Of a stretch of 64,000 nucleotides of DNA, positions 19,385 through 60,917 are shown in pieces. Both the position numbers and the translations under genes were made by a program. The first letter of the stretch is position 1; each line of letters begins with the position of its first letter. Below the pieces are notes generated by a model. That model was not told the origin of the DNA, searched no databases, and saw only the letters and a list, made by a program, of their open reading frames with translations. Origin of the DNA: Haliotis rubra (taxonomy: Eukaryota). Where the stretch lies: NCBI RefSeq assembly GCF_003918875.1, contig NW_025767492.1, positions 1-64,000 on the forward strand. Reading direction: 5' to 3'.

Positions 19385-20050
19385 ATATTTGTCTACTGAT
19401 CACTTGCCTATCATTATGATAATATGGTTTTCACTCATAAAAAGTTCAACCTTTTGGGTCAATCGGTAAGAAAGTAGAACATCCTCTTGGGAGAACATTT
19501 GATGTACACGGGAATGTGTGTGATCGCAACAGACAGTATTGTGTAATTACAATTATTGAAAGGCGATAGTTGACTTACAAGCACAAAAAACAACAACATG
19601 CAGTACTTTCGGATATAAAAAGGAATATGTCCCTTATTTACACTTCATTGAAAGAACACAACTCTGGATATATGTAACTGAGGGGACGTAACACCGAGTT
19701 CAGCATTTTACCCACATATTCTATGGTAACTATTGTCAGTTGTGGCCGGCTCTCGTGTTACGGGTCCCAGGAATTAGACACGTGTCCCTCACGTGCGAGA
19801 CGTTTATTCAGTAAACGAGGCCACATTCATTCTTGCAGGTGATAAGGTGCGCCACATGGATAATGGAAATTAAACATGAGAACAGTAGGCATGCATACAC
19901 CAATAATAATCAGAGACGATGAAATTATATAAATCACAAGTGATCAATGATAACAACACATATGAACCTGATCCGAGAATTACTTTCACTGTATATCATT
20001 GTCATTCACTCCTTCAACACAATAGCTTTTCGAACGTTCCAGCAGATTTT

Positions 20051-21589
20051 TTAGGGGCGGTGGGGTAGCAACATCACACGTTTATTACTCAAAATAATCC
20101 ACCATCGGTGGTACATGAGTATAACAAAGAGGTATGTTACATACAATATGTACAACAAGATGACTAAATGATGCATCAATTAAAGTGTTTGCAAACAATC
20201 TTGATGAACTTGGATACATTTTTAAGGGTAGATATTTTACTTGAAAACAGTTGACGGAATTTCGATAAATTTGGCCAGTAACTATAAGGTTCTTTTAACA
20301 ACGATTTACGTATGTCTGCAAAATAATTACATTTAAACAAATAGTGGAACTCATCTCCGACCAAATGTGAGTCACATAAGTTACAAACTCTGTGTTCTTT
20401 TGGTATATTTTGCCATCTCCCTGTTTCTATGGGGAGTTTATGGTTGCATGTTCTAAATTTTAGGATCGGTTTAGAAATAGCATCTGAGAGAAGTAGGTAT
20501 TGTTCAAAGTTTGGAGAGCGCTTCAGAACTTTATAGTATATTCCTTTAGAGGAATTTTGCATATCGCTCGTCCACGATTGTAAAAATTGGTCCTTTAAGA
20601 TAGATTCAACATTTGAAATGATCCATGAATTTGAGTATAGATGAGGGTTGTCAAAAACGTCAGGCAATCCTCACCTACAGAGAATATCTTTAATATGACT
20701 AAGCCAGACATAGTTATTCAATGTTTTGTTTTGTTTAGTAATATATTGAAGAATGAAAGTTGCTATTTTGTTATTTGGATGTGATAATGTCAATTTACAC
20801 CAGTACGAGATAAGTCGTTTCGAAATTTGAAGCTGAATAGGTTCCCTACCAAGCTCCCCGTACACCATGAAATTAGGGGTGTTATATTTTAAACCAGTTG
20901 CTAATTTAAGAAATTTTAGATGTACTCTTTCTATCATGTCAGTCTTCTCATGTCCCCATATTTCACATCCATACATCAATATTGGTACTATTAATCTATC
21001 AAATGCAGAAAGGAGCAGGTCCAGTGGTAACTTAACATTTCTGGCACGTTTTAGTAACGCTATTGATGCCTTCATACCAAGATCGGCTATGTGTTTAACA
21101 GCAAAATTCATACGACCATTTCTGTGTAGTAGAGTTCCCAGATATTTATAAGTGTCTACAACTTCTATTCTATCATCATATAGTGTAAACAATTTCTTAT
21201 AACTAGCTGCAGGTCCGGAACCAAAAACAATAATATTAGTTTTACTAATATTTACTTTAAGTTTCCATGTGTCGCAATATACAGCGAATTTATTCGGTGC
21301 ATGTTGTAAATCATCATGAGTTTCAGCTAAGAGGACTGTATCGTCAGCGTAAAGTAGAACTAGCAATTTTAGATAAATAATAAACTCATCATTATTTGTT
21401 TTAATTCAATACCGAAACATGCTTGTTCTTTGGGGTAGCCTAATGGTTAAAGCGTTGGCTCGTCACGCCGAAGACCCGGGTTCGAATCCCCACATGGGTA
21501 CAATGTGTTAAGCCCATTTCTGGTGTCCCCCACCGTGATGTTACTAGAATATTGCTAAAAGCGGCGTAAAACCAAACTCAGTCAGTCAG
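20051..21589 (+). mobile_element. tRNA-derived SINE interrupted by a LINE fragment
   Basis: TSD TCCAGCAGATTTT at 20038-20050 and 21590-21602. SINE head GGGGCGGTGGGGTAGC at about 20054-20069 resumes at 21431. Confidence 0.85.
20070..21430 (-). mobile_element. 5'-truncated LINE (RT C-terminal part + CCHC knuckle), RTE-X-like
   Basis: LLYADDTVL, YKYLG, HKLPIETGRW and C..C..GDEFHYLFKC, with one in-frame stop. TSD TGGGGTAGC at 20061-20069 and 21431-21439. Confidence 0.88.
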
Positions 21590-21811
21590 TCCAGCAGATT
21601 TTATAAATGTACATTGAATTTGTATCCGCATTTTCAAAAAAATATCGACTTAATAAAATTCCTGTTCAAACAGGTTTTCATGAATGCACGTTTACTGATG
21701 GATCAGAAGAATGTTTCCACCAATGAGAGCAATCGAGTTATTTATATGCGTTTCACTGGTCTCTCTCTTGGTTCTCTCAGTTGAATCAGAGGTCATACTT
21801 ACACAGTGAGC

Positions 21812-23349
21812 ATGAAGGAACGGAGGATTTGTTGTTATTTGGTCGGCTATATCGAATGGCTTTTCAGTGACTATTATCCTACAGCAGAGAATATCACCAG
21901 GTACGTAATGCATTGTTATTTAGTCAATGAATGTGTGATTCAAGACTAATCTTATGGATAACAACTTCTTGATTTATTTTTCACAACGTTTCTGGGCTAG
22001 TTCTTGCCCCTTGTTCAGGTGGATCCACCTGAAAATAAATCAAGAAGTTGTTATCCATAAGATTTGTCTTGTATTACTACACCAACTTCTAAATGCCTTT
22101 GAAGAATTTGATTGTGTGATTGTTCATGTAAAATGTCAATATATCTGAACGCCCGACTGTCTGTCTCTCTCTCTGTTCATCTTGTCTTCCTACCCACCCT
22201 GCAATATAAAATTGAACGTTACATGTAACTACAATAACATAAAAAGCTTTATTTAAACATCAGAATATAGGATTATATCATATGTTTCACTGATATACCG
22301 AGGATCGGAATTTGGATCAGAGTATCTTATCACAGTCAAGTCACCGGGACACATATTTATATCCGGGTTCTACAAAAACCAACACCAGCATCACCTATTG
22401 TAACACCATCAGTACACGTGTATCCTTGATTAATCCTTTTCCGGCTATCTGCGTACAGAACATTATCCTATAGCTTAAGCAGGTCATATTTTCTGTATGT
22501 TGCATTATTTGATCAGCAATCTCGACCAATAGACATAGCAACGTTATCTCCCTTGTACCACAGATGTTGAAGGAGATTGATGACTTCAACGAGGAGACTC
22601 AAAAGAAGGATATTACAGATGAAATGCCCGATCGTGGTGTAAGTTGAGTGTAGAATACAACGGAGAATTAACCTGCCCCTGTACAGTTATGATTCGCTTG
22701 AGTGTTACAATATGTTCAATATATACATATGTATAATTCTTAAAGGTGACATTGTAGTGGACATACATGAGATGAGAATCTCGACCTCTTTTAAAGGAAT
22801 AAGACAACATAATTCTAACAATCAGAAAAGGAAAATAGTAGCCCTAAGGATTGTGAATGAGTGAAACCTGATTGGTTCATATTTACCTGCAGATAGCATT
22901 ACACATGCACAGTTTCGTATGGTTGTTTTCATTTGTTTCAAAACTGCACCATACGAATTTAATATGTACTGTGTTGAATATTCCATTTCCCTTATTTTTA
23001 CTTCAGTACATTTACTTCTCTCAAAATGAACATTTGTTTTTGTTTCAGAGGGGACGACTGGGCCAGTCATCTGACAGAAGAACAACGGATGGCTCCTGTG
23101 ACAACGAAGTCTGTGTTGCTGGTGTCGGGGTGCCTGGGCGAAAGTTGGGAGACGGTCGGACTCCGACTAGGACTGTCCTATGTTTGTGTACAGAGGTGTA
23201 AGGTGCCTCACTGTATGCTGGACAAGTGGAGGATGAAGGAGGGTGGGAAGGCTACAGTGGACGTGCTGGTGAATGTCCTCCAGGAGAGTGTGTATGCCTG
23301 TACAGTGGACATGTTTACTGTAGTCAGGTGTTTTAAACACACTGCCTAA
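21812..23349 (+). pseudogene. Death-domain gene family A copy 1 (exons 21812-21900, 22564-22638, 23049-23349); frameshifted unless exon 2 is skipped
   Basis: Exon 1 is 89 nt (paralogs 90) and the start of exon 3 lacks 14 nt relative to copy 2. Canonical GT/AG sites; the DD frame is open. Confidence 0.65.
21941..22071. mobile_element. Small foldback/MITE insertion in intron 1 of A1
   Basis: About 40-bp inverted repeat CAAGACTAATCTTATGGATAACAACTTCTTGATTTATTTT / AAAATAAATCAAGAAGTTGTTATCCATAAGATTTGTCTTG, absent from paralogous introns. Confidence 0.7.
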
Positions 23350-23940: not shown

Positions 23941-24679
23941 ACAAAGACTAGAGATAAAGACTTTTCTGAATTGAAAAATAATAATGTGATAAGAGTTTAA
24001 TCACTGTAAATTAACATGCCTAACACGGAATAAAAAAGTCCTTTCATAAATGTACATTGAGCATTTTGGAGTTGATGTAGTGTTAGCATGTACCGTGTGT
24101 GCAGTTCGTTTGCTTTTTCACAAGGATGTTGTTTCAATGTCACTGCCAACCAAAGATACGTATAAGTATTCCACCATTGAGCTTACGTCTTGAAACAAAT
24201 CGCAATATTGTGGAGAAGGAACATTTCTATATTTGTTTCTTGTCCAAAAATCCTGGAAATGTGAGTTTCGTATTGATATAAATAATTTGAACCATATCAT
24301 CCACCCGTGAAGATCGGGTTAAAACTGGCTTCACTGTCTGGTCCACAATCGATCATTTACAGACCACTGTCATTTAGGTGGCATAGTTCTCAGTGCAGTG
24401 TAAATAACAAAGTAGCGTCTAGTTTAGATCCGATATTTGTAGCGGATCCGAAGAATCAATGTAATATTTGGGCATGCATGTATGCACGTTACATCAGTCA
24501 TCTTTGTTGAAGGCATTTCGTGGTTAGTGAAATGATCAATACACTTAATGATAAATGAATCATTTGAACGTTCCTGAAACAAATTTAAACATTCACTTTC
24601 AAATTGAGTCAAGGCGTTAAACGTATCAATTATTCCACACAGCAACAGATGAGGTCAGATGTGTCAAAATAGCTCAAAC

Positions 24680-25013
24680 CCGGAAGTATTTCCCTTTTTA
24701 TTTTTTAAAAAAACTAGAAACGGACCACACCTTGCTTGTAAAGTTGAAGCATGTATCGTAGATTATAGTCTTCTTATCATAAAAACATTAATGTTGGGTA
24801 TGTTTCAAATTGGGCGAAATCACAATCAAGTGCAAAATTTCTATCAACAGTGATACAAACAGTTTACATGTATGAAGATGCAAAATATTTATTTGAACTA
24901 TTTCAAATTCATATTTGTTTTTCAAGAGTGGTCAGGTTAGATGCTGAGACATTTTATTGACCAAGCACTCTTTCCCAATGATAGACAGGGTTAGAATGAC
25001 GTATCTATAAATA
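24680..25013 (+). promoter_or_regulatory. Candidate family-B promoter (ETS-like CCGGAAGT, TGACGT, TATA box)
   Basis: CCGGAAGT at 24680 and TATAAATA at 25006. Both are conserved in B2 (44292, 44608); the TATA is mutated in B3 (about 50942). Confidence 0.4.
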
Positions 25014-25127
25014 GTAACACGTCAAAACTATTTCAAGTAAATCCGAAAATTGTGATCCGTTACGTTACCACAACCTGTATCGACTGCATGGGACATGCAT
25101 AACGTAACGAGCTGCCATTGAGCCCAG

Positions 25128-25758
25128 ATGTCCTATGTCTTCAGGGGAGAACTGACTGAACATGTTCCGTCGGAGATTATTTGTACAGAGGATTTTTTAA
25201 GAGACGATTATCTTTTTCTCTTCAGGGGGATTTTCTGCTGCTATGGACAGTTTGAATTTCAGGTAGGACAAACATATATGTTTATGTATTTGTTGTATTA
25301 AGATATAATTGTTATTGTGATGTTGGTCGATTTATTACATTAAGTCATTAATCGTCACAAACATCTGTACCATCATGGCATTTTCTACAAAAAGAGCGGT
25401 ACTATTATATTTATGTTTGCAGCCATTATCCAGCGATGGTGGCTCAACAATACCTCTGACTGACGCTATTCAGGACTCCTGTCTCTCGGAGCAGCTTCTA
25501 CTGCGTGTAGCTGAGCATATTGGGGAGGGATTTGAAGCAGTGGGCATAAGACTGGGCCTACCCAAGGCGTTCATAGACAGATGTAAGATGTCACACTTCT
25601 CGCATCACATGCAGGTGTTTCACATGATGTACACGTGGAGGCAGTTAGCTGGGACACAAGCTACGGTTAGGGTTCTGATGGATGTTCTGGCAGACTCTGT
25701 TCACGTGTGTGATGTTGATGTGGACGCCGTTGTATTGCTGTTGAAGACAATGGAGTAA
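25128..25758 (+). CDS. Death-domain gene family B copy 1 (exon 1 ending 25262, exon 2 25423-25758)
   Basis: Donor CAG|GTAGGA and acceptor TTGCAG|CCA. Exon 1 ends IFCCYGQFEFQ. It is open from ATG 25128; the ATG homologous to B2 (25162) is out of frame because of two homopolymer insertions. Confidence 0.65.
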
Positions 25759-26258
25759 ATGTCATGGATTTGATTTATGATGTGAGTCAAAGGAAAAGCT
25801 GTAACCAGAAGCTGCAGGAAACATGTACTTGTAAACGCTGCACGCAGGAAAGAACGTATTTTGGTCTAATATATTTCTCTTCACAGTTATATGGGCCGAT
25901 ATCATATCTACCTGCTTCACATCCTAAAAAGAACCTTATTCATGAGTGTTCTATGCTCGTACACAGATGAGGAAGGATGGCTTCAACACTATTATACTGA
26001 GAAACATTCACACCTTGTATCCATGGTGGGATTTCTGTTGTGACGAATAAGAAACATATGTGCGTCATATAAACTCAGGTCAGCATGTTACTATAACGGC
26101 CATGAGAAGAGACCAGTAAACACTCTACGTTGTAGAAACGTTGTTGTTCCTCCATCAAAAGAAAGTGATCCTTTGTGTGTCTGTGTCAGTGTTTGTCTGT
26201 ATCTAGCTTGTGAAGCTGTGTCATGGACATCTCCCTGCTGCTGAGGCTGAAATATTAC

Positions 26259-26381
26259 ACACTGAAGATACGCCTGCTAACACTGAAGATACGCCTGCTA
26301 ACACTGGAGATACGCCTGCTAACACTGGAGATACGCCTGCTAACACTGGAGATACGCCTGCTAACACTGGAGATACGCCTG
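26259..26381. repeat. 21-bp minisatellite x6
   Basis: Unit ACACTGGAGATACGCCTGCTA; x4 at about 52220, x1 at about 35433 and about 45873. Confidence 0.9.
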
Positions 26382-27732
26382 ATCAGATAACTGCTGAGCT
26401 CTCGCTGTGTATAACAGTTACACGAGTGTCGCCTCAATGACGATCCGAACATTCTGACAATATGTCAGTGACAGGTTTTACGCTGGTCATCGATAAATAT
26501 GTCAGGTCACCACTGGGAACAACAGGAATTGCCTTCATATAGTGTCCCTAGTTGAGGTCATAGCTGCAAAACGTCTTCATATAAATGTATACGTAGCCTG
26601 TATATAAGTGTTAGATTGATATATTGCTTACATATATAATTATACTTTATGTCATAGAATATGAATAAAACATCATGTACAATGAGTATTTTGTTCTTGA
26701 AAATATGCGGAAGGGTATTTATCAAAAAAATATGTCGTTGTTGCTATCCTATCGGTAGCTTTTATCAGTTGTCAGGCTCTGGTGTTAAGGATCCCAGAGA
26801 TTACACATGTGACCTTCACGAATGATCGATGATAACAACACATGTGAACCTGATCCGAAAATTACTCTCACAAACATTAGTGCTTCCATTACATATACAC
26901 GCAAGTGGAGAGGCCTCTGTAACTCGAACTCATCTCACCACCAGACAATGCATCCTTGTTGCATTATTTGTAAATGGGTGGTCACGGGGTTATGGGGATG
27001 ATCCCGAGATTCTAAATGCTTTGAGGAAGGTAAAATGATATTTTTCGGATTTCTTCACAACTCTCAGATTGCTGCTAAAATCGGAGCCATTGTTTGTATT
27101 GTGAATATATATAGTTTGTAAACTATAAACTAGATTCGTTAAGGGTAAAAGAATCATTTTCATGGACAGGTGGCTGTCTTGACAAACAAATCATGCAGCA
27201 CAAAGATTTACAGGATCCGAAACTACAACAGAACACATGACACAGGACTCGATATATGATCCGAACTTTGCGATTCCGAGTTTTTCCACAGCTGAATCCG
27301 ACGGTTGTCGCAAGCCTGACACTTGCAACCAGTCCATGAGCTGCAAATTAACTATACCTCAGAAGATGTTGACTGGAACAAGCAAAGTAGTGGCTGAAAT
27401 GACCTAAGCGGATAACGATCCATGTTGTCCTCGTGTCCATCTTACTAGATCGGAGTGATTCCAGTTTTGCAGTACTGGCCCACTTAGACACTATGCTACA
27501 GTGTAACATGGTCACACCAGTCACACACAGTAAACCAACATGTGCTTATTAACTAAATACCGGGTGCCAGCAGAATAGCAACAAGAGCCGTCTTTCAGTG
27601 TATGTCTGTATTTGGCAGATGAGGATCGAACCACTGACCATCCGCTCTCCAGGAAGACACCCTGCCCACTACACCATGAAGGCAGACATGTATAGCGACA
27701 TGAGGGACAATATAGTTTATATGGAATTATTG

Positions 27733-27970
27733 TGAGTGAGTGAGTGAGATTAGCTTTACGCCGCACTCAGCAATATTCCAGCTATATGGCGGAGGACTGT
27801 AAATAATAGAATCCGGACCAGACAATCCCGTGATCAACTGTATGAACATCGATCTACGAATTTGGATACGTGTCAACCAAGTCAGCGAGCCAAACCACCC
27901 GATCCCGTTTGTCTCCTCTTACGACAAGCATGGGTTACTAAAGACCAATTCCACCTGGATTTTCACGAGT
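27733..27970 (-). mobile_element. (ACTC)n-tailed SINE
   Basis: Same family as 13826-14077. Shared with paralog 53618-53853 and absent from the paralogous spacers at about 40845 and about 47508. Confidence 0.85.
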
Positions 27971-29252
27971 ATAGGGAATTATACTTCATATGTATTGTCA
28001 TATGGTATGACACACAGGCATCAACTGAACATCTAATAGTGCATTAAAAACCACTAAACATATACTACAATATATAGACACAAAGCAGTCGAGTCAGTTA
28101 TAAGCTCGATCCGACGAAAAAGGTAACAGGAGATAACATTATCAGAAGGGACATAGAACCCTCCAGCTTATAGCTGTCTCCAGTAGTAACTGTGACTATT
28201 GTCGTGGATAGATATGATTCATATAGGTTTTACATATTTTCTGTGAATGAATGTGCATTACACAGTTTCAGCTTGGAAGTCACATTTAAAAGCTTTAGTC
28301 CTGTCTGAAGAAACATCCAGTTTAAATGTTATCAATTGTAAGTGTTGGGGTATTTCTATTTGGCTTTCTGGGGAAATGTTTTTTTTGTGTGTGCGTACAT
28401 GCGTGCGTGCGTGTGTGTGTGTGTGCGTGTGTGTGCTGTTTGGTTCTGGCTTGGTATGTTTTTTTGTTTTGTTTATGTTTTGTATTTGTTTTGTTTTAGT
28501 TGTTTCATAAAAGTGTGTGGTTGGGGTGTGGGTGTCACGTGACGTTATGGGGAAGTTCAAGAACCCCTATCAGAATTGGAATTAACTGAAATGGTCACTG
28601 ACACGACTCGTCATGACATTACATGCTGACCCAATAAAGTAGTACATGGAAGAGATCCACTCAATTCACGGAACAAAATCAGCTGTAATAGCAAGTCCAT
28701 GTACTTCACTTCCAAAATATGGTGCTGGGATGAGATAACATCCTGCTAAGCCTGTCATGAATCATCCACGTTATCACAACAGATATTTACAGATTGGCTG
28801 TGATTAGCTGGCGGATCCGAAAATTATTTCAGTCCTGGAGTTATATAAATATGCAGACCATAGATCCCTCGAAGCACAAGCAGTCAGTTGGGAAATCCGA
28901 CAAATATGGTGCTTGAATTTACATGTAATTATTGACCTGAGTGTATATAACCGCCAATCTGTCCAGCACAATAAGTAGCTGAAAAACCTTTCAATCTTTC
29001 CGGCAGTTTTTATAAATGTTCATCAAATTTGTATCCACATTTTCAAAACACTCGACTTAATAAAAGTCCTCTTCAAAGAGGTTTTTATGTATGCACGTCA
29101 ACTGTAGGATCCGAAGAATGATTCAACCAATGAGAGCAGTGGAGTTATTTATAAGCTTTTCACAGACCCCAGTCGGCGCATGTTCACTGGGACACAAACA
29201 CTGGACAGCTACGTCGCTCTCTCAGTTGCCTCAGTGGTCTTACACAGGGAGG

Positions 29253-30600
29253 ATGAAGGAACGGAACAACTGTTGTTTATTTTGTCGGCTATGTAGGATG
29301 ACTTTTCAGTGGCTAATATGCTGTAGCCAAGCATGTCACCAGGTACGTTGTTGACATACTTATTCAGTCAATGATTGCGTGAAGTGTAATTTGTATGTAC
29401 GTAAATGTAACAAAATGCCCCAATGTCTCTGTTTATTTTGTCTTACTATCCACTCTGAACTATTAATTGATCGTTACACGTAACTACAATAACATAGTAA
29501 GCTTTATGTAACATCAGAATGGAGGATTCTATCATATTTTGTACACACAGAGTCTTCGCTGTTTTACCTCGGATCCGAATATCTTCACGAAGTACACGTC
29601 ACAGGGACACATTTTTAAATCCGGGTTCAGTGAAAAAAAATACCAGCATCACCTATTGTAACACCATCATAACACGTGTATACTTGATCAATCGTTTCCC
29701 CTTATCTGCGTATCGAGCATTTCCAATGCAGGTCATATTGTGCACATCTCGCATCATTTGTATTATGATCAGCAATCTTTACCAAGGTACATAGACATAA
29801 TTACCTCCCTTGCACCACAGGTTCTGAAGGCGACTGATGAGTTGGAAGAGGAGACTACAAGGAAGGACATAACAGATGAAATGCCCTATCGTGGTGTAAG
29901 TTTAGTGTAGAATACAGCACAGAATGTTCCTACCCCATGTACAATTATAATTCTACTGATTGTTATATGTTTAACATGTACATAAGTTTCATTGTAGTGG
30001 ACATACATAGGACATAAACCTTCATCTTTGATAGGAATTATAAGACAACATAACAACTCCAACAATCAGCCAAAGGAAAATAACAGCCCTGAGTGTTATG
30101 AATGACTTAAACGTGATATGTTCACATTTACAATCAGTTGTCACAATCAAACAGTTTCGTATAGTTATTCGCATCTGTTTCAAAACTGCATCATACGAAC
30201 TTAATATGTGCTGAACATTTCATTGCCCTTAATTTTACTTCAAAGCACATTTTCCTTTCTCAAAATGAACATATCATTGTTTCAGGACAAGTGTTCAAGA
30301 GAGGACGACTGGGCCAGTCATCTGACAGAAAAACAACGGATGGCTCCTGTGACGGAGAGAGTTGTGTTGCTGGTGTCGGAGTGCCTGGGTGAAGGTTGGG
30401 AGACGGTCGGACTCCGACTGGGACTGTCCTATGCTTGTGTACAGAGGTGTAAGCTGCCTCACTGTATGCTGGAAAAGTGGAGGATGAAGGAGAGTGGGAA
30501 GGCTACAGTGGACGTGCTGGTGAATGTCCTCCAGGAGAGTGTGTATACCTGTACAGTGGACATGTTTGCTGTAGTCAAATGTTTTCAACACACTACTTAA
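29253..30600 (+). CDS. Death-domain protein family A copy 2, 159 aa (exons 29253-29342, 29821-29895, 30286-30600)
   Basis: MKERNNCCLFCRLCRMTFQWLICCSQACHQ|VLKATDELEEETTRKDITDEMPYRG|DKCSREDDW...LGEGWETVGLRLGLSYACVQRCK..MLEKW..GKAT. All introns are phase 0 with GT/AG sites. Confidence 0.8.
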
Positions 30601-32640
30601 TATTCACAACGTTTATCACCGGTAGGCGCTGCAAACATGAGGACCACATTTGTTCAAGACCATTGACTGTGTCGCATCTGGATGTATGAAGAACATATAC
30701 AATGGAACTTAATTACGTTAGAGATTACTATTACTGATCATCTCCTGTGTTAAGTTATGTCTGAGTTATGAAGTTACTAACCTGTTCCAAACTACCCGTT
30801 GCTGCTATTTGTGTGTATATATACAGATTTTCACTTGGGTTGGTTTCATTTCCAACAACTAATTCATTTAACGTTGGAACTAATTTGGGTTCAGGGCAAA
30901 AGATATTGCATCAGTGCAGTGACCATTGCTGGTGAACATTTGTTACTATGATTTGATATATTTACGGAAACCTTCATTCGAATTAAAGACGTCTCTGAAT
31001 TGTAAAACACTTATGTGACATTTGTCAGCTTACAGACATTTCCGGAAATAAAATGTCATTTCAGAACAGATATTGAGTATTTTGAGTATAAGTGTGCTGT
31101 TGTTTGTTTTGGTTTATATCGTCAATGTCATCGTCAATGGTTTTATGTGTTGATATGAGAGATTTAGATCCGGGACTTCAGCAACCAATGCATGTCGTAA
31201 GAGGCGACTAACGGGATTGTGTGGCCAGGCTCGCTGACTTGGTTGATACATGTCCTTGTATACCAAATGCATAGATGACTCGATTATTCACAGACCACTG
31301 TCATAAAGCTGGCACATCACCGAGCGTAAACAATCAACAAAGAAGCGTTAGTTTGGATCCGATATTTGTGTCTGATCCGAAAAGTCGGTGTAATGTATGG
31401 GTACTCATGCATAGACATAGCATCTAACCCCAGACATACGAGTGCGTAGAGATTTCGCACAGCTGAAAACACTACTTTAATATGACAGAGTGATGACGGG
31501 CAGTACATGATGTCACCCAAAATATACTTCATGGATGCATGTACGTCATTTAGAATGCATACATTATTCGATCTTTTTTTAAAATCATAGATAAAAAATA
31601 AATGTTCTGATCAGCACAATTCACAATTTGTAATCTAAAGTTAATTATGGCATCTACAAAAAATATCTAATTGAGCCAAATGCATTTAACCTGACATATA
31701 CTATATTGTCGAACAAAATATTTTTATACTGAAACGGAAGTGCCCTTGGTCCTCGGATTCGATTAAAACCATAGGACCTGGATTCATGCCAATAGGCAAT
31801 ATGAATTAAAACCGTTTGGTTATTACAAAACATCAGCAGTCGCCGTATATTATCTGAAACATGTTTGTCATTTATGAAACGCACATAAGTGAAATGTTGT
31901 AGAAAAGTGTCAAAAAGCATATTAACCCAAGTTCACTACTCCAGACAAGCGGTTACCAAGATCAACAGTTGGGTTTCTGTAACATGTCGGGGCCATCATC
32001 AAAACGATAACAAAGGATGCCCAGACATTATTTTTATTTCTAAATAATGATCCACTGCATTTCACAAAGACAGCATGTGTTGTATATTACTTTTATATAC
32101 AGAGTATCTGAAACAGCAATAGTTACAAGCAAATATTACCAAAGCGGTTCTTAATCCGAATCTTATGGAAAATATTACCCAAACATTAATTGTGATCATA
32201 ACAACAAAAAAACATTATAATTCCTTAGTACAAATAATGAACTACTGATTTTCATAAACAGAAGCGACAAAACCTTTTCCACATCAATAAGAAATCTCAG
32301 CTAAAAGCAGAGTCGATTATACGATTGTGACTAAATCATGAGTATGTGTAAGCTTCAGCAGAATTCGTGCTGTACGATCTTGTTTGTGAACAATCGAGTC
32401 CGGACCAGACAATCAAGTGATTATCACCATGCGATACGATGACAGCATATGTTTATGCATTAGTATGAAATAGTGATGATACCAGGTGTTTCCTATCCCA
32501 CCCGTTATAAATATATGCAAAGTCTAGTCAATTGTTAACCTGAAAATATTTCGGGAACGTATGGTATAAGTCAAAATAGTGACTTGCATAGGACATCATT
32601 TTTGTCACTGATACGTTGAGTTGAAGTGTGAGTTAGATCA

Positions 32641-33450
32641 TCAGTGCTCCTTTAACACGGCGACGACATCCCACATGTCTGTATTGCACACCTGTAGACT
32701 CTGCTGGAGGATAACCATCAGATTCCCGGCTGTAGCCTCCTGACCTTCCTTCCTCCTCCGCGTGTTCAACATGGCAAAGATCTGCAGCACACAGGTAGAG
32801 TGAGTCATCTTGCACCTCTGTACACACACATAAGTCAGCCCTAGACGGACGCCAACCGCCTCCCAACCTTCCCCTAGGTTCTCCGACACAAGCAGCAATG
32901 TCTTTTCTGTCAGGTATACGTTCTTCTCTTCCTCCGACAACTGATTCCGCCAGTCTGTATTTGAAGGGACAGGCTAGAATATACAGTAAAAGTTCTGATA
33001 AAGTATGATCAACCCAATGTTGCATGTAATTCAGCATTACTACATGAGAAATTTGTATACCTGCTCGGCAAGTGTTACCATAATCAAACAGTAGTGTACA
33101 TAACCATAAACAGTGACACTGTTAATGTGAATGCCTCATTCAATTTACGTTTGATTGTCTTTAAGGTCCTAGGTCCTCGGGTTTTAGGTCCTCCTCGGCA
33201 AGTGCTACCATAATCAAACAGTAGTTGACAAAACCATATACAGTGACACTGTTAATGTGAATCTCTCATTCAATTTACCAATTTACCACTTGGCCAAGTC
33301 TTCAGTTGTGTTTGGTGTGTTTACAGTGTACTTTTATGAATAACCACACCAAATATACATACATTAAGTTGTTAGATTAATTAATAAAGCCAATTATCCT
33401 ACCTTGTAAATTCTTCTGAAACAACAGCAAATAGCCCCCTTCGTTTGCAT
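32641..33450 (-). CDS. Death-domain protein family C copy 1, 126 aa (exons 33450-33403, 32973-32641)
   Basis: MQTKGAICCCFRRIYK|PVPSNTDWRNQLSEEEKNVYLTEKTLLLVSENLGEGWEAVGVRLGL.. with donor AAG|GTAGGA and acceptor TTCTAG|. The conserved helix-4 Trp is replaced by Arg. Confidence 0.75.
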
Positions 33451-34729
33451 GTCGGAGAACCGTCCTGTCCCAGGGAGGAAACACTTTATACGATGATTAC
33501 CTACTGGCCACTTTTCAGCGCCTGCACGTTTTGAGATACTGACTGCTAGTGACGAGCATTTAACAGTCCCCGAAGAAGCATGCTGTATTAATAGATCCAA
33601 ATCATTGCGACGCACGGAAGTTCAAAACCTTTCAATGGATCCGAAATGTGCTGCTTCAGATATGCTTGTTAAACCATTGTGTCAACAACGAACCTAATGG
33701 CTGTCATTATCAAAACCATCCAATCATTTCCAACTTATAGTATAAATTACCAGCAGATTACCAGATGAAACTGTGTAACGATCCGAAAACACAGACACAC
33801 TGATATGCTATCTTGTGTTAACGAGCATTAACTTACACGGATCTGAACTTTAACCATATTATGTATACACCTCGTAAAGTATTAATGTTCATTGTTGTGA
33901 TACAATATATACACGTCATACAGATATGAATGATCCTCAGAGATTAATAGGGCTGGCTAAAATGATCGATAATCGGAAATATGGTAGAACTTTTTCAGTT
34001 TTAACAAATGACTTAAATCATGGTCTGCTTCTAAATTATGTTCAGAGTGATGTTTTGTTAATGATCCATGCCAAAACATGTCACCACTCACTAGCGAAGA
34101 GAAATAGTCATTTCTGGCATTTTTGCTCAAAATTCCGATATTATCGATCGATATTTAGTTAACGATTACCAATCTCTATGATCTAAATCAAGAGCCAGTT
34201 CTACACCTTAATATATACGTTTTCAACACTATTTAGCCTGGTACGTCCTTTGGAACCTGTTTGACAGCTAATCAGAAATGATTATTATCTGGTTTTATGT
34301 TTATCATCATATTTACACCTAAATGATATGCTGATATATCACCTCTTTGCGAACACATGGTGCTATCTCTATTTGATAGTGATTCATAAACACATGCTGG
34401 TGATGTAGTTGAAACCATACAAGTGACTCTGCACTTGACAGGTTTCTGGGGGATGTGGAAAGCTTTTTGTCGGAATCCAACTAGGAATATAAGTTATGAA
34501 AATTGGAGACATCATATTTTGTCTTCAGACTTGCTGACTTGCTTGACAGAGGTCCCTGAACCCCACGGTGTTGGTGATCAAGTGATCAACAGCATGAGTA
34601 TCGATCTGCGCAATTGGGAAGTGATGACATGTGTCAACCAAGTCAGCGAGCCTGACCACCCTATCCCGTTGGTCGTCTATAACGACAAGCCTGAGTTACG
34701 GAAGATCAATATTGTTTGTCAACAACAAA

Positions 34730-39564: not shown

Positions 39565-39566
39565 CC

Positions 39567-48835: not shown

Positions 48836-49868
48836 ATGAAGGAACGGAACATCTGTTGTTCATTTGGTCGGCTATTTAGGATGGCTTTTCAGTGGCTACT
48901 ATGCTGTAGCCAAGAATATCACCAGGTACGTTATGCAATGTTGACATTTTTATTCAGATATTGTGTAAAGTGTATTTATATGTGTAAATGTGTGTCTATC
49001 AGTCTCAGGCCAACTTAACTGCACTGTTAATGGTCGTTTCAACTACAATAACGTATAACGTACATAAGCATTATTTAAACATCTGAATGTAGGATTATAT
49101 CATATTTTTTACATACAGAGTCTTCACTATTTTACCTCGGATCCGAATATCTTCACACAGTCACTTCACGGATTACATTTACATCCGGATTCAACAAAAA
49201 CCAACACCAGCATCACCTATTGTAACACCATCATTACACGTGTACACTTGATGAATTCTTTTCTAATTATCTGCGTATAGTTGTTCGCATTTGTTTCAAA
49301 ACTGCATCATACGAATTTAATGAATTCTGTACTGAATATTCCATTGTCCTTTCTTTTACTTCAAAGTGCATTTACCTTTCTCAAAAAAAACATATCATTG
49401 TTTCAGGACAAGTGTTCAAGGGACGACTGGACCAGTCATCTGACAGAAGAACAACGGATGGCTCCTGTGACAAAGAAGTCTGTGTTGCTGATGTCGGAGT
49501 GCCTGGGCGAAGGTTGGGAGATGGTCGGACTCCGACTAGGACTGTCCTATGCTTGTGTACAGAGGTGTAAGCTGCCTCACTGTATGCTGGACAAGTGGAG
49601 GATGAAGGAGGGTGTGAAGGCTACAGTTGGCGTGCTGGTGAATGTGCTCCAGGAGAGTGTGTATGCCTGTACAGTGGACATGTTTGCTGTAGTCAAATGT
49701 TTTCAACACTCTGTTTCATGTTCACAACATACATCACCGGTAGGCGCTGCCAAAATGAGGATCACATTTCTTCAAACCATTCACTGTGTTGCATTTGAAT
49801 CTATAAAGTCCGTTACGTCTGAGATTACTATTACTGGTCATCTCCTTTTATCAATTTCCTGCGGCTAA
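48836..49868 (+). CDS. Death-domain protein family A copy 4, 183 aa (exons 48836-48925, 49407-49868), C-terminal read-through
   Basis: MKERNICCSFGRLFRMAFQWLLCCSQEYHQ|DKCSRDDW... Exon 2 is deleted, and the stop TGA of copy 3 is TCA here. Confidence 0.72.
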
Positions 49869-51097: not shown

Positions 51098-51702
51098 ATG
51101 TTCCGTCAGAGATTTTTTATACAGAGAGTTTTTGAGAGACGATTTTTTTTTCTCTTCAGAGGATTTTCTGCTGCTATGGACAGTTTGAATATCAGGTGGG
51201 GCCTTTAGGAAAAAAACATATATGTTTATGTATTTATTGTATTAAGTTACAATTGTTATTGTGATGTTGGTCGATTTATTACATTGAGTCATTGTACGTC
51301 ACAAACATCTATACCATCATGGCATTTTCTACAAAAAGAGCGGTACTATTATATCTATGTTTGCAGCCACTATCCAGCGATGGTGGGTCAACAATACCTC
51401 TGACTGACGCTATTCAGGACTCCTGTCTCCCAGAGCAGCTTCTACTGCGTGTAGCTGAGCATATTGGGGAGGGATTTGAAGCATTTGGCATAAGACTGGG
51501 CCTACCCAAGGCGTTCATAGACAGGTGTAAGATGTCTCACTCCTCGCATCACATGCAGGTGTTTCACATGATGTACACGTGGAGGCAGTTAGCTGGGACA
51601 CAAGCTACGGTCAAGGTTCTGATGGATGTTCTGGCAGACTCTGTACACGTGTGTGATGTTGATGTGGACGCCGTTGCAAGGCTGTTGAAGACAATGGAGT
51701 AA
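51098..51702 (+). CDS. Death-domain gene family B copy 3 (exons 51098-51195, 51367-51702); exon 1 is 1 nt short in a T9 run
   Basis: DD exon is intact and near-identical to B1. Exon 1 is 98 nt vs 99 in B2 and the donor is altered to GTGGGG. Could be a pseudogene or a homopolymer assembly error. Confidence 0.6.
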
Positions 51703-52219: not shown

Positions 52220-52302
52220 ACACTGGAGATACGCCTGCTAACACTGGAGATACGCCTGCTAACACTGGAGATACGCCTGCTAACACTGAAGATACGCCTG
52301 CT
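52220..52302. repeat. 21-bp minisatellite x4
   Basis: Paralog of 26259-26381. Confidence 0.88.
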
Positions 52303-53853: not shown

Positions 53854-55179
53854 TATAGGAAATTATACTTCATATGTATTGTCATATGGTATGACACACA
53901 GACATCAACTGAACATCTAATAGTGCATTAAAAACCACTAAACATATACTACAATATATAGACTCAAAGCAGTCGAGTCAGTTATAAGCACGATCCGACA
54001 AATAAGTTGACAGGAGATAACATTATCACAAGGGACATAGAACCCTCCAGCTTATAGCTGTCTCCAATAGCAACTGTGACTATTGTCATGGATAGATATG
54101 ATTCATATAGGTTTTACATATTTTCTGTTAATGAATGTGCATTACACAGTTTCAGCTTGGAAGTCACATTTAAAAGCTTTAGTCCTGTCTGAAGAAACAT
54201 CCAGTTTAAATGTTATCAATTGTAAGTGTTGGGGTATTTCTATTTTGCTTTGTAGGGTAATTTTGTGTGTGTGTCCGTGCGTGCGTGTGTGTGGTGTTTG
54301 GTTCTGGTTTGGTATGTTTTGTTTTTTTTTTTGTTTGTTTGTTTTACTTGTTTCATAAAAGTGTGTGATTGGGGTATGGGTGTCACGTGACGTTATGGGG
54401 AAGTTCAAGAACCCCATCAGAATTGGAATTAACTGAAATGGTCACTGACACAAGTCATCATGACATTACATGCTGACCAAATAATATAGTAGATGGAAGA
54501 GATCCACTCACTTCGCGAAACCAAATCAGCTGTAATAGCAAGTTCATGTACTTCACTTCCAAAATATGGTGCTGGGATGAGATAACATCCTGCTGATCCT
54601 AGTTCATATCACTGTCATGAACCATCCGTGTTATCACAGCAGATATTTACAGATTGGCTGTGATTAGCTGGCGGATCCGAAGAATATTTTAGCCCTGGGT
54701 TTATGTATATGCAATTTAAAGACCCGTCTAAGCACCATCAATCAGTTGGGAAATCCGACAAATATGGGGCTTGAATTTACATGTACTTATTGACCTGAGT
54801 GTATATAACCGCCAATCTGTCCAGCACAATAAGTACCTGAAAAACCTTTCATTGATGCGGCAGTTTTTATAAATGTCCATCAAATTTGTATCCATATTTT
54901 CAAAACACCTATCCATATTTTAAAAACACTCGACTTAATAAAAGTCCTCTTCAAAGAGGTTTTCATGTATGCACGTCAACTGGTGGATCCGAAGAATGAT
55001 TCAACCAATGAGAGCTGTCGAGTTATTCATATGCATTTCACAGACCCCAGTCGGCGCATGTCCACTGAGACACCAACACTGGACAGCTACGTCGCTCTCT
55101 CAGTTGACTCAGTGGTCTTACTTACACAGGGAGGTAGAAGGAACGGAACAACTGTTGTTCATTTGGTCGGCTATGTAGG

Positions 55180-56773
55180 ATGGCTTTTCAGTGGCTAATA
55201 TGCTGTAGCCAAGCATGTCACCAGGTACGTTGTTGACATACTTATACAGTCAATGATTGCGTGAAGTGTAATTTGTATGTACGTAAATGTAAGAAAACGT
55301 CCCAATGTCTCTGTTCATTTTGTCTTACTATCCACCTTGAACTATTAATTGATCGTTACACGTAACTACAATAACATAGTAAGCTTTATGTAAACATCAG
55401 AATTGAGGATTCTATCATATTTTGTACATACAGAGTATTCCCTGTTTTACCTCGGATCCGAATATCTTCACACAATCACGTCACGGGGACACATATTTTA
55501 ATCCCCGTTCTACAAAAAACAAATACCATAATTTGTTTAAACGCAAATGTGTCTCTCCCCGAAAATCTAAATGTGTCTAAACGCCCCACTGTCTCTGTGT
55601 CTGTTCATCTTGTGTCTCTGTCCATTCTGAACTATTAACTGATTGTTATACTTAACTACAATGACATTAAAGCTTTATGTATACATCAGAATGTAGGATA
55701 ATATCCCATGTTTTACATACAGAGTTTTTACTGACATACCGAGGATCCGAATATCTTCACGAAGTACACGTCACAGGGACACATATTTAAATCCGGGTTC
55801 AGTGAAAACAAATACCAGCATCACCTATTGTAACACCATCATAACACGTGTATGCTTGATCAATCTTTTTTCCCCTTATCTGCGTATCGAGCATTGTCAA
55901 TGCAGGTCATATTGTGCACATCTCGCATCATTTTATGATCTTATTGTATTATGATCAGCAAATCTTTACCAAGAGACATAGACATAATTACCTCCCTTGC
56001 ATCACAGGTTTTGAAGGCGACTGATGAGTTGGATGAGGAGATTACAAGGAAGGACATAACAGATGTAATGCCGGATCGTCGTGTAAGTTGAGTGTAGAAT
56101 ACAGCACAGAATGTTCCTACCCATGTACAATTACATTTCTACTGATTGTTATATGTTTAACATGTACTTATGTTTCAATGTGGTGGACATACATGGGACA
56201 AAAACCTTCATCTTTAATAGGAATTATAAGACAACATAACAACTCCAACAATCAGCAAAAGGAAAATAACAGCCCTGAGTGTTATGAATGACTTAAACGT
56301 GATATGTTCATACAATCAGTTGTCACAATTACACAGTTTCGTATAGTTATTCGCATTTGTTTCAAAACTGCATCATACGAACTTAATATGTGCTGAACAT
56401 TTCATTGCCCTTACTTTTACTTCAAAGCACATTTTCCTTTCTCAAAATGAACATATCATTGTTTCAGTGTTCAAGAGAGGACTGGGCCAGTCATCTGACA
56501 GAAGAACAACGGATGGCTCCTGTGACAGAGAGAGTTGTGTTGCTGGTGTCGGAGTGCCTGGGTGAAGGTTGGGAGACGGTCGGACTCCGACTGGGACTGT
56601 CCTATGCTTGTGTACAGAGGTGTAAACTGCCTCGCTGTATGCTGGACAAGTGGAGGATGAAGGAGGGTGGGAAGGCTACAGCGGACGTGCTGGTGAATGT
56701 CCTCCAGGAGAGTGTGTATACCTGTACAGTGGACATGTTTGCTGTTGTCAGGTGTTTTCAACACACTGCCTAA
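55180..56773 (+). CDS. Death-domain gene family A copy 5 (exons ending 55224, 56008-56082, 56468-56773); original start lost
   Basis: The ATG is replaced by TAG at 55135. An in-frame ATG at 55180 gives MAFQWLICCSQACHQ|VLKATDELDEE..|CSREDW.. (141 aa). Confidence 0.65.
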
Positions 56774-58584
56774 TATTCACAACATATATCACCGGTAGGC
56801 GCTGCAAAGATGAGGATCACATTTGTTCAAGACCATTGACTGTGTCGCATCTGGATGTATGAAGAACATGTACAATGGAACTTAATTACGTTAGAGATTA
56901 CTATTACTGATCATCTCCTGTGTTAAGTTATGTCTAAGTTATGAAGTTACTAACCTGTTGCAAAATACCTGTTGCTGCTATTTGTGTGTATATATACAGA
57001 TTTTCACTTGGGTTGGTATCATTTCCAACAACTAATTCATTTAACGTTGGAACTAATTTGGGTTCAGGGCACATTGATATTTGATCAGTTTAGTGACCAT
57101 TGCTGGTGAACATTTGTTACTATGATTTGATATATTTACGGAAACCTTCACTCGAATTAAAGACGTCTCTGAATTGTAAGACGCTAATGTGACAAGAGTT
57201 CAAAATTTGTCAGTTTACAGGCATTTCCGGAAATATCATGTCATTTCAGAAACAGATATTGAGTATTTTGAGTATAAAGTATGCTGTTGTTTGTTTTTGT
57301 TTATCTCGTCAATGTCAACGTCAATGGTTGTGTGCGTTGATATGAGTGATTTAGATCCGGGACTTCAGCAACCAATCCTTGTCGTTAGAGGCGACTAACG
57401 GGATTGTGTGGCCAGGCTCGCTGACTTGGTTGATACATGTCTTTGTGTACCAAATGCGTAGATGACTCGATTACTCACAGACCGCTGTCATTAAGTTTGC
57501 ACATCGCTGAGCGTAAACAACAAATAAAGAAGCGTTAGTTTGGATCCGATATTTGTGTCTCATTCGAAAAGTCGGTGTAATGTATGTGCACTCATGCGTA
57601 CACATAGCATCTAACACCAACGAAGAGATACGTAGAGATTTCGCACAGTTTAAAACACTACTTTAATATGACAGCGTGATGACGGGAAGTACATTATGCC
57701 ACTCAAAATATACTTCATGGATGCATGTACGTCATTAAGAATGCATACATTATTCGATCTATTTCAATATCATAGATGAAAAGTAAATGTTCTGATCAGC
57801 ATAATTCACAATTTGTAATCTAATGTTAATTATGACATCTACAAAAAATATGTAATTTAGTCAAATGCATTTAACCTGACATATGCTATATTGTCGAACA
57901 AAATTATTTTATACCGAAACAGAAGTTCCTTTGGTTCTGGGATCCGATTGAAACTAACACTGTTTGGTTATTGCAAAACATCAGCAGTCGCCGTATATTA
58001 TCAGAAACATGTTTGTCATTTATGCAACGCACATTAGTGAAATGTTGTAGAAAATTATCAAAAAGCATATCAACCCAAGTTCACTAACAGTTGGGTTTCT
58101 ATAACATGTCGGGGCCATCATCAAAAAGATAACAAAGGATGCCCAGACATTATTTTCATTTCTAAATAATGATCCACTGAATTTCACAAGACAGCATGTG
58201 CTGTATATTATTTTTATATACAGAGTATCTGAAACAGCAATAGTTACAAGCAAACATTACCAAAGCAGTTCTGAATCCGAATCTTATGGAAAATATTACA
58301 CAGACATTAATTGTGATCATAACAATAAAAAACAATATAATTCTTTAGAAAAAATAATGAACTACTGATTTTCATAAACAGAAGCGACAAAACCTTTTCC
58401 ACATTAATAAGAAATCTCAGCTAAAAAGCAGAGTCGATGATACAATTGTGACTGAATCATGAGTATGTGTAAGCTTCAGCAGAATTCTAGCTGTACGATC
58501 TTGTTTGTAAACAATCGAGTCTGGACCAGACAATCAAGTGATTATCACCATGCGATACGATGACAGAGCATGGGTTTATGCATT

Positions 58585-59490: not shown

Positions 59491-59671
59491 AGTATGAAAA
59501 TAATTGATGATACCAGGTGTTTCCTGTCCCACCCGATATAAATATATGCAAAGCGTAGTCAAATTGGTAACCTGAAAATATTTCGGAACGTATGGTATAA
59601 GTCAAAATAGTGACTTCCATCGGACATCGTTGTTGTCACTGATACGTTGAGTTGAGGTGTGAGTTAGATCA

Positions 59672-60504
59672 TCAGTGCTCCTTCAACACGGCGACGACAC
59701 CCCACATGTCTATATTGCACACCTGTAGACTCTGCTGTAGGATCATCATCATATTCCCCGCTGTAGCCTCCTGACCTTCCTTCCTCCTCCACGTGTTCAA
59801 CATGGCAAAGATCTGCGTCACACAGGTAGAGTGAGTCATCTTGCACCTCTTTACACGCACATAAGTCAGCCCTAGACGGACGCCCACCGCCTCCCAACCT
59901 TCCCCTTGGTTCTCCGACACAAGCAGCAATGTCTTCTCTGTCAGGTGTTTTTCTCTTCCTCCGACAGCTGATTCCGCCAGTCTGTATTTGAAGGGACAGG
60001 CTAGAATATACAGAAAAGTTCTGATAGAGGTATGATCAACCCAATGTTGCATGTAATTCAGCATTACTACATGAGAAATTTTTATACCTGCTCGGCAAGT
60101 ACTACCATTATTAAATAGTAGTGGACAAAACCATATACAGTGACGCTGTTAATGTGAATCTCTCAATCAATTTACGTTTAATTGTTTTTTTATGTCCTGG
60201 GTCCTAGGTCCTCAGGGTTTAGGGACTGCTCGGCAAACACTACCATTACTAAATAGAAGTGGACAAAACCATATAAAGTGACACTGTCATTGTCAATATC
60301 TCATATAATGATTTCTTTCCGCTTTACTTCTTGTCTGGATACCGTGGCCAAATCTTCAGTTGTGTTTGGTGTGTTTAAAGTGTACTTTCATGAATAGCCA
60401 CGCCAAATATATATTCGTTAAGTGTTTAGATTAATTAATAAAGCCAATTATCCTATTTTGTAATTTCTTCTGAAACAACAGCAAATAGCCCCCATCGTTT
60501 GCAT
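59672..60504 (-). pseudogene. Death-domain gene family C copy 2 (exons 60504-60457, 60000-59672)
   Basis: Exon 1 reads MQTMGAICCCFRRNYK but the donor GT is changed to AT. A 4-nt deletion in exon 2 shifts the frame relative to C1. Confidence 0.75.
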
Positions 60505-60917
60505 GTCAGAGAATCGTCCTGTCCTAGAGATGAAACACCTTGTACGATGGTTACCTACTGGTCACCTTTCAGCGCCTGCACGTTGAGATACTGACTGCTA
60601 GTGACGAGCTAGATTCGAGATACTGTATTAATAGATCCATATCATTGCGACACACGGAAGTTCAAAACTTTTCAATGGATCCGACATGTGCTGCTTCAGT
60701 TATGCTTCTTTGACCATTGTGTCAACAACAAAACTAATGTCTGTCTCTATGAAATCCATCCATTCACATGCACCTTATAGTTTAAATTACCAGCAGTACG
60801 ATGAAACTGTGTCACGATCCGAAAACTTAGACACACTGATATGCTGTCTTCTGTTAACGAGAGTTAACTTGCACGGATCCGAACTTTAACCATATTCTGT
60901 ATACACCTCGCAAAGTA

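Follow-up and report, generated by a model that had tools for sequence, protein, structure and literature searches.

Gene Content of the Locus

The stretch analyzed here, referred to as the window, comprises 64,000 nucleotides of Haliotis rubra (assembly GCF_003918875.1, contig NW_025767492.1, positions 1 to 64,000 of the forward strand) and is free of N. Small death-domain-only genes are arrayed in tandem in it and are of three kinds, types 1 and 2 on the + strand and type C on the - strand; over this array, the 7-mer GATCCGA and its 8-mer form GATCCGAA, hereafter the word, are repeated. The open reading frames on the + strand encode Pfam Death domains. A protein search using the cluster proteins gave Haliotis proteins only, including the H. 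rubra entries P0001, P0002, and P0014 (Table 1), while the more distant matches were generic death domains of crinoid, amphioxus, and coral, plus one bacterial protein. The small death-domain family was thus found in Haliotis alone in these protein searches, and the word was not traced beyond the genus. Self-comparison of the window revealed two direct segmental duplications, one between 24.3-34.7 kb and 50.2-63.3 kb (~90% identity) and the other between 39.5-44 kb and 46.1-50.2 kb (~93% identity). The sole inverted self-match in the window is a ~300-bp repeat.

Enrichment of the Word in the Cluster

An exact search of the window detected 49 copies of GATCCGA, all within 19970-60882, of which 44 are on the + strand and 5 on the - strand. 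A preliminary description of this DNA, prepared by reading the letters, had counted about 44 copies on the + strand and is in agreement with this result. Dinucleotide shuffles of the whole window gave 4.1 ± 2.1 copies on both strands, and the number 49 was reached in 0 of 100 shuffles. As had been described, GATCCGA is missing between 1 and 19.9 kb, where neither strand has a copy, and also from the long interspersed nuclear element (LINE; 35.7-39.5 kb) and from the remnant of a Tc1 insertion (18.5-19.2 kb). The G+C content of the cluster was evaluated to be 39.7%, which replaces the earlier estimate of 36%. The observed/expected ratio of CpG is 0.70 in the cluster versus 0.79 in the flank, and is hence not higher in the cluster.

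Most of the raw count is accounted for by the direct duplications. When each later paralogous copy was masked, 19.8 kb of unique cluster DNA was obtained, which contained 10 copies of GATCCGA on the + strand and none on the - strand, against 1.3 expected from an order-3 Markov model (Poisson p ~1e-6). This indicates that the enrichment outlasts the collapsing of paralogues, which had been set beforehand as the test. GATCCGA and GATCCGAA were the strongest 7-mer and 8-mer outliers after collapsing, low-complexity words aside. Words with one mismatch numbered 20 on the + strand and 16 on the - strand and were neither enriched nor strand-biased, indicating that the word is sharply defined; the many AATCCGA/GATCCGN variants reported in the preliminary description are therefore at background level. 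On the + strand of the cluster, the 44 intact copies stand against 3 GATCTGA and 2 GATCCAA, which are the products of CpG decay.

Contexts of the Sites

The 44 sites on the + strand sort by their flanks into ~15 classes, denoted A1, A2, B, C, D1, D2, E, F, G, H, I, J, K, L, and M (Table 1). Class A sites are located 0.76-1.1 kb past the type-2 stop codons, and classes B-E occupy the interval from the type-1 stop to the type-2 promoter. Upstream of the gene C TATA box, at a distance of 150-290 bp, are classes I, J, and M, which are antisense to gene C. Copies in the spacers and in intron 1 occur about once per 0.7-1 kb. Local alignment of the ±120-bp flanks between the 15 classes, scored against shuffles, gave z < 4.5 beyond the core in 206 comparisons. 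The exceptions were pairs overlapping the same paralogous stretch, which leaves ~14 contexts, all on the + strand. This is consistent with the earlier statement that a dozen or more sites lie in non-homologous contexts; an alignment of the flanks as one decayed satellite or transposable-element unit, which had been named as a refutation, was not observed. A transposon or satellite relic was ruled out for the whole array by these unrelated flanks, and was kept for class C/K alone, which is the monomer of a short satellite and the only satellite class among the site classes.

When the sites were anchored on the core, the information content was limited to positions -1 to +11, with background outside, and the full consensus reads (G)GATCCGA-A-R-A-A/T-T. 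The base directly 3' of the 7-mer is A in 11 of 16 contexts. A 3' extension GATCCGARRAAT is common to classes A2, C, F, G, and K, and another, GATCCGAACTTT, to classes D2 and M, which suggests that the ~14 contexts descend from fewer ancestors. An origin from a tRNA B box or a short interspersed nuclear element (SINE) was also considered, as the word is, by inspection, one mismatch from the reverse complement of the B box. It was rejected on the grounds that the flanking GG/CC is missing, that a tRNA-invariant position is changed, and that Rfam yielded no family in the window. A literature search for the string of the word returned cloning primers alone.

Four of the five matches on the - strand are the class H palindrome TCGGATCCGA, which is located in intron 1 of four type-2 gene copies (29569, 43012, 49137, and 55452). 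The fifth match, at 42699, is part of a 10-bp target duplication, ACCTCGGATC, generated by a ~300-bp insertion into a class H site (window 42707-43010; 42699-43021 with the target). This insertion is an inverted copy of 17103-17404 with 78% identity and a (CTCA)n tetranucleotide-repeat tail, and it looks like a SINE or a LINE 3'-end. The earlier statement that the reverse form TCGGATC appears only within one palindromic site accordingly holds for four matches but not for the one at 42699. The + orientation that had been described around the minus-strand C genes is correct at 33638, 33780, 60678, 60816, and 60876.

Promoter-Proximal Copies

Eight type-2 upstream regions from three species were aligned. 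The blocks follow in the order of TGGATCCGAAGAAT, 8 bp, CCAATGAGAGC, 7 bp, and GTTATTYATA, and then come a conserved 5' untranslated region (5'UTR) and the ATG. This promoter block is invariant in 7 of the 8 copies, the exception being a probable pseudogene (copy 0). The 13-mer GGATCCGAAGAAT, which contains the class G word, is the longest invariant stretch of the type-2 promoter, and in these seven copies it is followed by CCAAT at a distance of 8 bp and by the TATA-like box at a distance of 27 bp. If transcription starts ~30 bp past the TATA-like box, the class G word would be located at ~-70, CCAAT at ~-52, and the TATA-like box at ~-30.

In the type-1 genes, AAATCCGA(A/G)AATTGTGA is located 33 bp after the start of the TATA box, and its AAATCCGA block was invariant in an alignment of four species. 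A variant of the word, AAATCCGARAAT, is hence positioned 33 bp past a strong TATA box, at the predicted transcription start, in all four. The word therefore holds a fixed position relative to the TATA box and the predicted start, which is kept across orthologues and paralogues, as expected for a promoter-proximal element, and it lies in the predicted core of at least two promoters. Judging from the arrangement of its words (Table 1), class F resembles a promoter duplicate; its distance to site G, which lies downstream, is ~300 bp.

Conservation among Haliotis Species

The loci encoding the closest homologues were compared, which were L001-L003 (21 kb each), L004 (including 100 N), L005, L006 (21 kb), and L008. 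The H. asinina loci L001-L003 contain, per locus, 26 copies on the + strand and 6 on the - strand, arranged in a 6.4-kb tandem unit; the two minus contexts per unit are species-specific, and one of them is in coding exon 1. H. rufescens L004 contains 43 and 0 copies, respectively, with zero in the first 7.3 kb, where a leucine-rich repeat gene lies, and H. cracherodii L008 contains 17 and 0. A second, paralogous locus of H. rubra (L005) has 13 and 1, and no copy was found on either strand of L006, the H. rubra locus of a 47%-identical death-domain paralogue. The sample of abalone DNA from outside the clusters, which was made up of window 1-19.9 kb, L006, and the flanking parts of L004, L005, and L008, totals 65.4 kb and is devoid of the word on both strands. 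The word therefore appears to be specific to this death-domain gene subfamily and not genome-wide, as far as this sample reaches. Together with its persistence after collapsing, this agrees with the preliminary description, in which the word was held to be real and locus-specific.

The H. rubra unit 24300-30760 shares 77% identity with the H. asinina unit. Among the 9 alignable non-exonic sites, 7 are identical between the two species, while identity was observed for only 14.5% of the non-coding 7-mers (binomial p = 3.6e-5) and 15.7% of the CpG-containing ones (p = 6.4e-5). Classes A2, D1, D2, and E are conserved in H. asinina. Furthermore, despite a flank identity of only 40-60%, classes B, D1, D2, E, G, and H are recognizable in H. 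rufescens and/or H. cracherodii; class B is present in both species and class D in H. cracherodii. Classes I and J are also present in the paralogous locus L005. Compared with the neighboring non-coding DNA, the word is thus under purifying selection, the constraint being real though not absolute, and the earlier claim of a selected word is supported by these values and by the presence of the array in four species.

The same array may be read without any function of the word, as the slowest-decaying core of locally amplified short repeats, perhaps homogenized by gene conversion, that hitch-hikes with the gene cluster. Such amplification does occur. A 101-bp satellite in H. rufescens (L004:17091-21470) consists of 43 copies with a 409-bp higher-order period and CTGATCCGAGAATTAC in each monomer, and is a species-specific amplification of the class C context, which is present as single monomers in H. 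rubra. In H. cracherodii, L008:4300-15500 is composed of tandem ~700/1390-bp units that are A-like, most of which contain GATCCGAAAAGT and, after it, a word resembling TATA and a donor-like word, GTGAGT. The common 3' extensions, which point to shared descent, and the decay of copies by CpG-to-TpG change fit this reading as well. It is, however, difficult to reconcile with class flanks that are unrelated while the 7-mer is exact, with one-mismatch decay products at background level, and with the word being the best-conserved block of the promoter. Between species that are ~23% diverged, the orthologous sites are kept ~four times more than control 7-mers, including those with CpG, and gene conversion within a genome cannot yield conservation between species. 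We hence regard a word without its own function as rather unlikely.

Origin of the Single Polarity

Each traceable birth of a site is a direct, head-to-tail duplication, which generated repeats of 12 bp, 62 bp, 101 bp, ~290 bp, and ~700 bp. In addition to the satellite and the tandem units mentioned above, they include the H/H2 pair (55455/55744), the 62-bp K/C monomers, and a 12-bp doubling, GATCCGAATTTGGATCCGAA, of class H in L004, L005, and L008. No inverted duplication of a site was seen among the traceable births. Direct duplications at every scale therefore lead to a one-strand array without the need for an orientation-dependent function, and they are the simpler explanation of the polarity, though a function of the orientation itself is possible. 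The preliminary description had inferred an oriented array that marks the whole locus and could set its chromatin or methylation state or polarize recombination; neither a function of the orientation itself nor such marking is supported by these data, and the direct duplications alone are enough for one polarity.

A functional orientation at the DNA level would require an architectural or roadblock factor with a direction-dependent effect, which stops read-through or sets promoter choice. The placement of the sites is compatible with such a factor: the polarity is near-absolute in four species and is kept beside the minus-strand gene C, and the sites are concentrated in the spacers that separate genes of the same strand and at ~-70 in the promoter that follows. 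Classes B-F follow type-1 genes, class A follows type-2 genes, and class G stands just before the next promoter. The first AATAAA/ATTAAA words past the type-2 stop codon (30982, 31047) also precede the A pair at 31356. As a roadblock, however, the intron-1 site and the type-1 start variant would block their own transcripts, and known insulator arrays are far less dense than one site per 0.7-1 kb. Conservation covers a block of only 8-13 bp that, by inspection, does not resemble the CTCF core, a minus-strand variant exists at 27040 and 52978, and direct duplication accounts for the polarity anyway. We consequently consider a functional orientation to be quite unlikely. A more specific form of this idea, in which a putative abalone DNA-binding protein reads GGATCCGAA one way only and acts as a directional roadblock, insulator, or promoter selector along the array, is judged to be very unlikely. 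If true, the one-way reading of GGATCCGAA would be an invertebrate, CTCF-unrelated counterpart of the protocadherin arrays of conserved sequence element (CSE) and CTCF sites or of the ribosomal DNA arrays of Sal-box and T0 sites.

An action of the word in RNA is hardly tenable, whether GAUCCGAA were read by an RNA-binding protein or, as the 7-mer with its A, formed the 8-mer seed match for a small RNA that begins with NUCGGAUC. In favor of this reading, the exact 7-8-mer with its following A resembles seed-match logic, all sites are sense to the majority gene strand, and they occur at the 5'UTR start, in the intron, and in regions 3' of stop codons. Against it, the copy that is best conserved precedes both the CCAAT and the TATA box and is ~70 bp away from the predicted start, on its upstream side; the first polyadenylation words come before the A pair, no + strand transcript is known for sites I and J, and the window holds no Rfam family. 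The extra conservation, moreover, is found on the 3' side of the core (RRAAT), with which a small RNA would not pair, whereas the 5' side has none. A microRNA target site, which would be located in mature mRNA, usually in the 3'UTR, and would need no conservation 3' of the seed match, was rejected for the same position and conservation pattern.

Feature Coordinates and Neighboring Sequences

The coordinates of the genes, promoters, and sites are collected in Table 1.

Table 1. Genes, promoter elements, and word sites of the death-domain cluster, in window positions.
Feature	Position	Strand	Remarks
Type-1 genes	25.2, 44.8, 51.2 kb	+
Type-1 gene, copy 1	exon 1 25164-25262; exon 2 25417-25755	+	exon 1 by homology to copy 2
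Type-1 gene, further copies	44764-45352; ~51154-51699	+	first is LOC124260714, matched by P0014 at 44764-45352
Type-2 genes	22.6, 29.3, 42.4, 48.8, 55.1 kb	+
Type-2 gene, copy 1	exons 29253-29345, 29818-29895, 30286-30597	+	LOC124260713; 100% identity to P0002 over the three exons
Type-2 gene, other copies	22561-23346, 42399-43591, 48836-49715, 55138-56770	+	last is LOC124260712, matched by P0001 at 55180-56770
Gene C, copy 1	death-domain exon 32647-32964	-	predicted exon 1 ATG 33450; TATAAAG 33490-33484
Gene C, copy 2	~59678-60500	-
Type-1 core promoter	25006; 25039-25055	+	TATAAATAG at 25006; variant word AAATCCGAAAATTGTGA at 25039-25055, at predicted transcription start
Type-1 variant word, paralogous copies	44641, 50975	+
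Type-2 proximal promoter	29090-29154	+	TATGCAC 29090; GGATCCGAAGAAT 29107-29119 (class G); CCAAT 29127-29131; TATA-like TATTTATAA 29146-29154; ATG 29253
Class G, paralogous sites	42252, 48691, 54986	+
Mutated class G block	21700-21712	+	GGATCAGAAGAAT; promoter remnant of type-2 copy 0
Class F	28814-28848	+	GATCCGAAAATT, then TATATAAA 27 bp on
Class F, copies	41527, 48190, 54674	+
Class A pair (A1 24427, A2 24445)	24427-24451	+	18 bp apart; ~565 bp upstream of type-1 TATA box, ~1.1 kb past preceding type-2 stop codon
Class A pair	31356, 31374	+	3' of type-2 copy 1
Class A, other copies	34763; 50358/50376; 57543	+	partner of 34763 decayed to GGATCTGA; partner of 57543 decayed
Class A, mutated copy	44.0 kb		mutated to GGATCAGA
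Class B	26442-26448	+	copies 35499, 45939, 52361
Class C	19970-19976	+	solo satellite-type monomer, left edge of cluster
Class C	26852-26858	+	copy 52792
Class K	52730	+	62 bp upstream of class C monomer 52792; copy 46359; counterpart at 26790 decayed to GATCCCA
Class D pair (D1 27214, D2 27258)	27214-27264	+	copies 40342/40386, 47039, 53196
Class E	28108-28114	+	copy 53992
Class H palindrome	29569-29578	both	intron 1 of type-2 gene
Class H, copies	43012-43021, 49137-49146, 55452-55461	both	tandem duplicate 55744
Classes I (33638) and J (33780)	33638-33786	+	copies 60678, 60816
Class M	60876	+	decayed to GGATCTGA in copy 1
Class L	57941-57947	+	single copy in window; also in L005
Variant word AAATCCGAAAAAT	27040-27050	-	exception to polarity; paralogous copy 52978

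The type-2 copy 0 (window 21582-23346) lacks most of the 5'UTR by deletion and has a mutated promoter word; its exon 1 was not found by tblastn, and it is a probable pseudogene. A LINE reverse-transcriptase fragment is located directly upstream of it on the minus strand (20176-21366). In H. cracherodii L008, the tandem units lie upstream of and inside an annotated 9-kb type-1 gene model, whose first exon (10001) falls between the donor-like word and a long (GA)n tract; this gene model looks doubtful. A 2174-residue protein encoded on an ENA metagenome contig (L009:10001-16525) has 11 stretches that match an abalone death-domain protein (34% identity, E = 2e-17). The neighbors on this contig are of bacterial type (integrase, transposase, and hydantoinase), and the protein is probably bacterial, with death-like domains arranged in an array.

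The 7-mer TATGCAC, which adjoins classes A and G, was tried as a second enriched word and rejected, as the window contains 11 copies versus 10.3 expected. The 12-mer ATGTATGCACGT is present at 24481, 23 bp downstream of the class A word, and at 29090, 8 bp upstream of the class G word; it may be either a second common regulatory word or the trace of an old circularly permuted tandem unit. The spacers also contain a 56-bp minisatellite with 5.3 copies that are 97% identical (window 41670-41962) and a 21-bp minisatellite (ACACTGGAGATACGCCTGCTA) with 4-6 copies (window 26259-26381 and 52220-52302), and the copy number of both varies between paralogous units. Window 31176-31254 is a fragment of a very abundant dispersed repeat, with similar sequence at 24300-24345. 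Hundreds of contigs from three runs match this fragment at 90-95% and continue into unlike sequence on both sides; the consensus of these loose ends includes CCCGTGAAGATCCGGGTTAGAAT.

Comparison with Known Systems

A close likeness is found with the CSE of each protocadherin variable-exon promoter and with homotypic clusters of transcription-factor sites, which share a short word, a fixed place in the promoter, the same orientation in each tandem unit, and extra copies nearby. The CSE is likewise conserved between species while its flanks drift. Most abalone copies are, however, outside promoters, in the spacers and intron 1, and the word measures 8-13 bp versus ~22 bp for the CSE. As a further difference, both the abalone family and its word are, within the reach of the searches, limited to a single genus of gastropods. 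Oriented CTCF sites in protocadherin promoters govern enhancer-promoter choice. CTCF arrays, Chi, and KOPS are similar to the abalone array in that a short word keeps largely to one strand across tens of kilobases. Chi and KOPS, however, occur throughout the genome and follow the direction of replication, whereas the abalone word is absent from the 65.4 kb of other abalone DNA, and by inspection it has no resemblance to the CTCF core.

The Sal-box terminators, bound by TTF-I, consist of oriented copies downstream of each rRNA gene and one more copy (T0) just upstream of the next promoter; this system involves RNA polymerase I, an 18-bp site, and a Myb-like factor. The abalone array similarly has oriented copies after a tandem gene and one before the next promoter, and in both cases the core contains a palindromic restriction site. 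The abalone genes are, however, protein-coding genes of RNA polymerase II, and copies are also located inside the transcription units.

DEAF1, a SAND-domain protein, binds to repeated TTCGGG with two CpGs 6-11 nt apart, only when unmethylated (PMC4274154), and is linked to the control of innate-immune genes (PMC3750155). The reverse complement of the abalone word, TTCGGATC, contains TTCGG with an essential CpG, a likeness of five letters only. In most abalone sites there is just one CpG, the DEAF1 consensus does not include the invariant GATC half, and the CpGs of paired abalone sites are 12, 18, or 44 bp apart, which does not correspond to the two half-sites of DEAF1. DEAF1 is hence a weak lead as a candidate reader of the word.

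The Ruby motif of C. elegans is the upstream word of 21U-RNA mini-genes and is found on both strands. It is similar to the abalone word in being short, exact, and dense in the introns and spacers of a defined chromosomal region, but the abalone sites are not followed by a fixed downstream start or TATA-like word. The microRNAs miR-10/miR-100 contain GAUCCGAA, an identical eight-letter string. The abalone sites are, however, in the sense of the microRNA and not its complement, the preceding base is mostly G instead of A, and the flanks differ. A relation to miR-10/100 was rejected on site position and conservation pattern and on the absence of an Rfam hairpin family in the window; the string match is most likely a coincidence.

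Interpretation

We propose, with moderate confidence, that GATCCGAA is a cis-regulatory word of one small death-domain-only gene subfamily in Haliotis, most likely the binding site of a sequence-specific transcription factor, which forms a homotypic cluster with a mainly historical polarity. Since at least one site is located in a promoter, a DNA-binding protein is its natural reader. The preliminary description had spoken of protein-binding sites, which is supported by at least one site in a predicted promoter, while its comparisons with Chi/KOPS and CTCF stay analogies. A homotypic cluster could concentrate one factor over the tandem array, by which its members would be switched together; for adaptors with death domains, the stimulus could plausibly be immune or stress-related. 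The array would grow by direct duplications, each new site inheriting the + orientation, after which the flanks would drift neutrally and the selected core would stay. The single polarity would then be mainly historical.

Several observations weigh against this proposal. Classes I and J, which precede the TATA box of gene C by ~150 and ~290 bp, are antisense to gene C, which indicates that the orientation is not simply sense to the nearest gene. Transcription-factor sites usually work in either orientation, and the ~14-19 contexts on the + strand versus 2-3 on the - strand are more one-sided than an independent origin predicts. A TATA-like word was found 25-60 bp downstream in 5 of 21 contexts versus upstream in 2 of 21, and the A+T profile is flat; most sites are therefore not promoters, and a mini-promoter at every site was rejected. 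In the H. cracherodii gene examined, the promoter word was lost by CpG-to-TpG change and reads GGATCTGAAGAAT, and several A and M copies have decayed, some by the same change. Furthermore, the available RNA-like runs gave no coverage of the cluster genes, the sole covered stretch being the dispersed-repeat fragment at 31176-31254.

The innate immunity of invertebrates has expanded death-domain families as one of its hallmarks. To our knowledge, their regulation is unexplored, and almost nothing is known about the cis-regulatory codes of molluscs. A sharply defined word of 8-13 bp, present in four abalone species at ~1 copy per kb, provides a ready bait for finding its regulator and a handle for reporters. 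The locus is also a clean example of a homotypic site cluster that grows by microduplication and satellite formation with its polarity kept. If this polarity were functional, it would represent a directional genome architecture built on a non-CTCF word.

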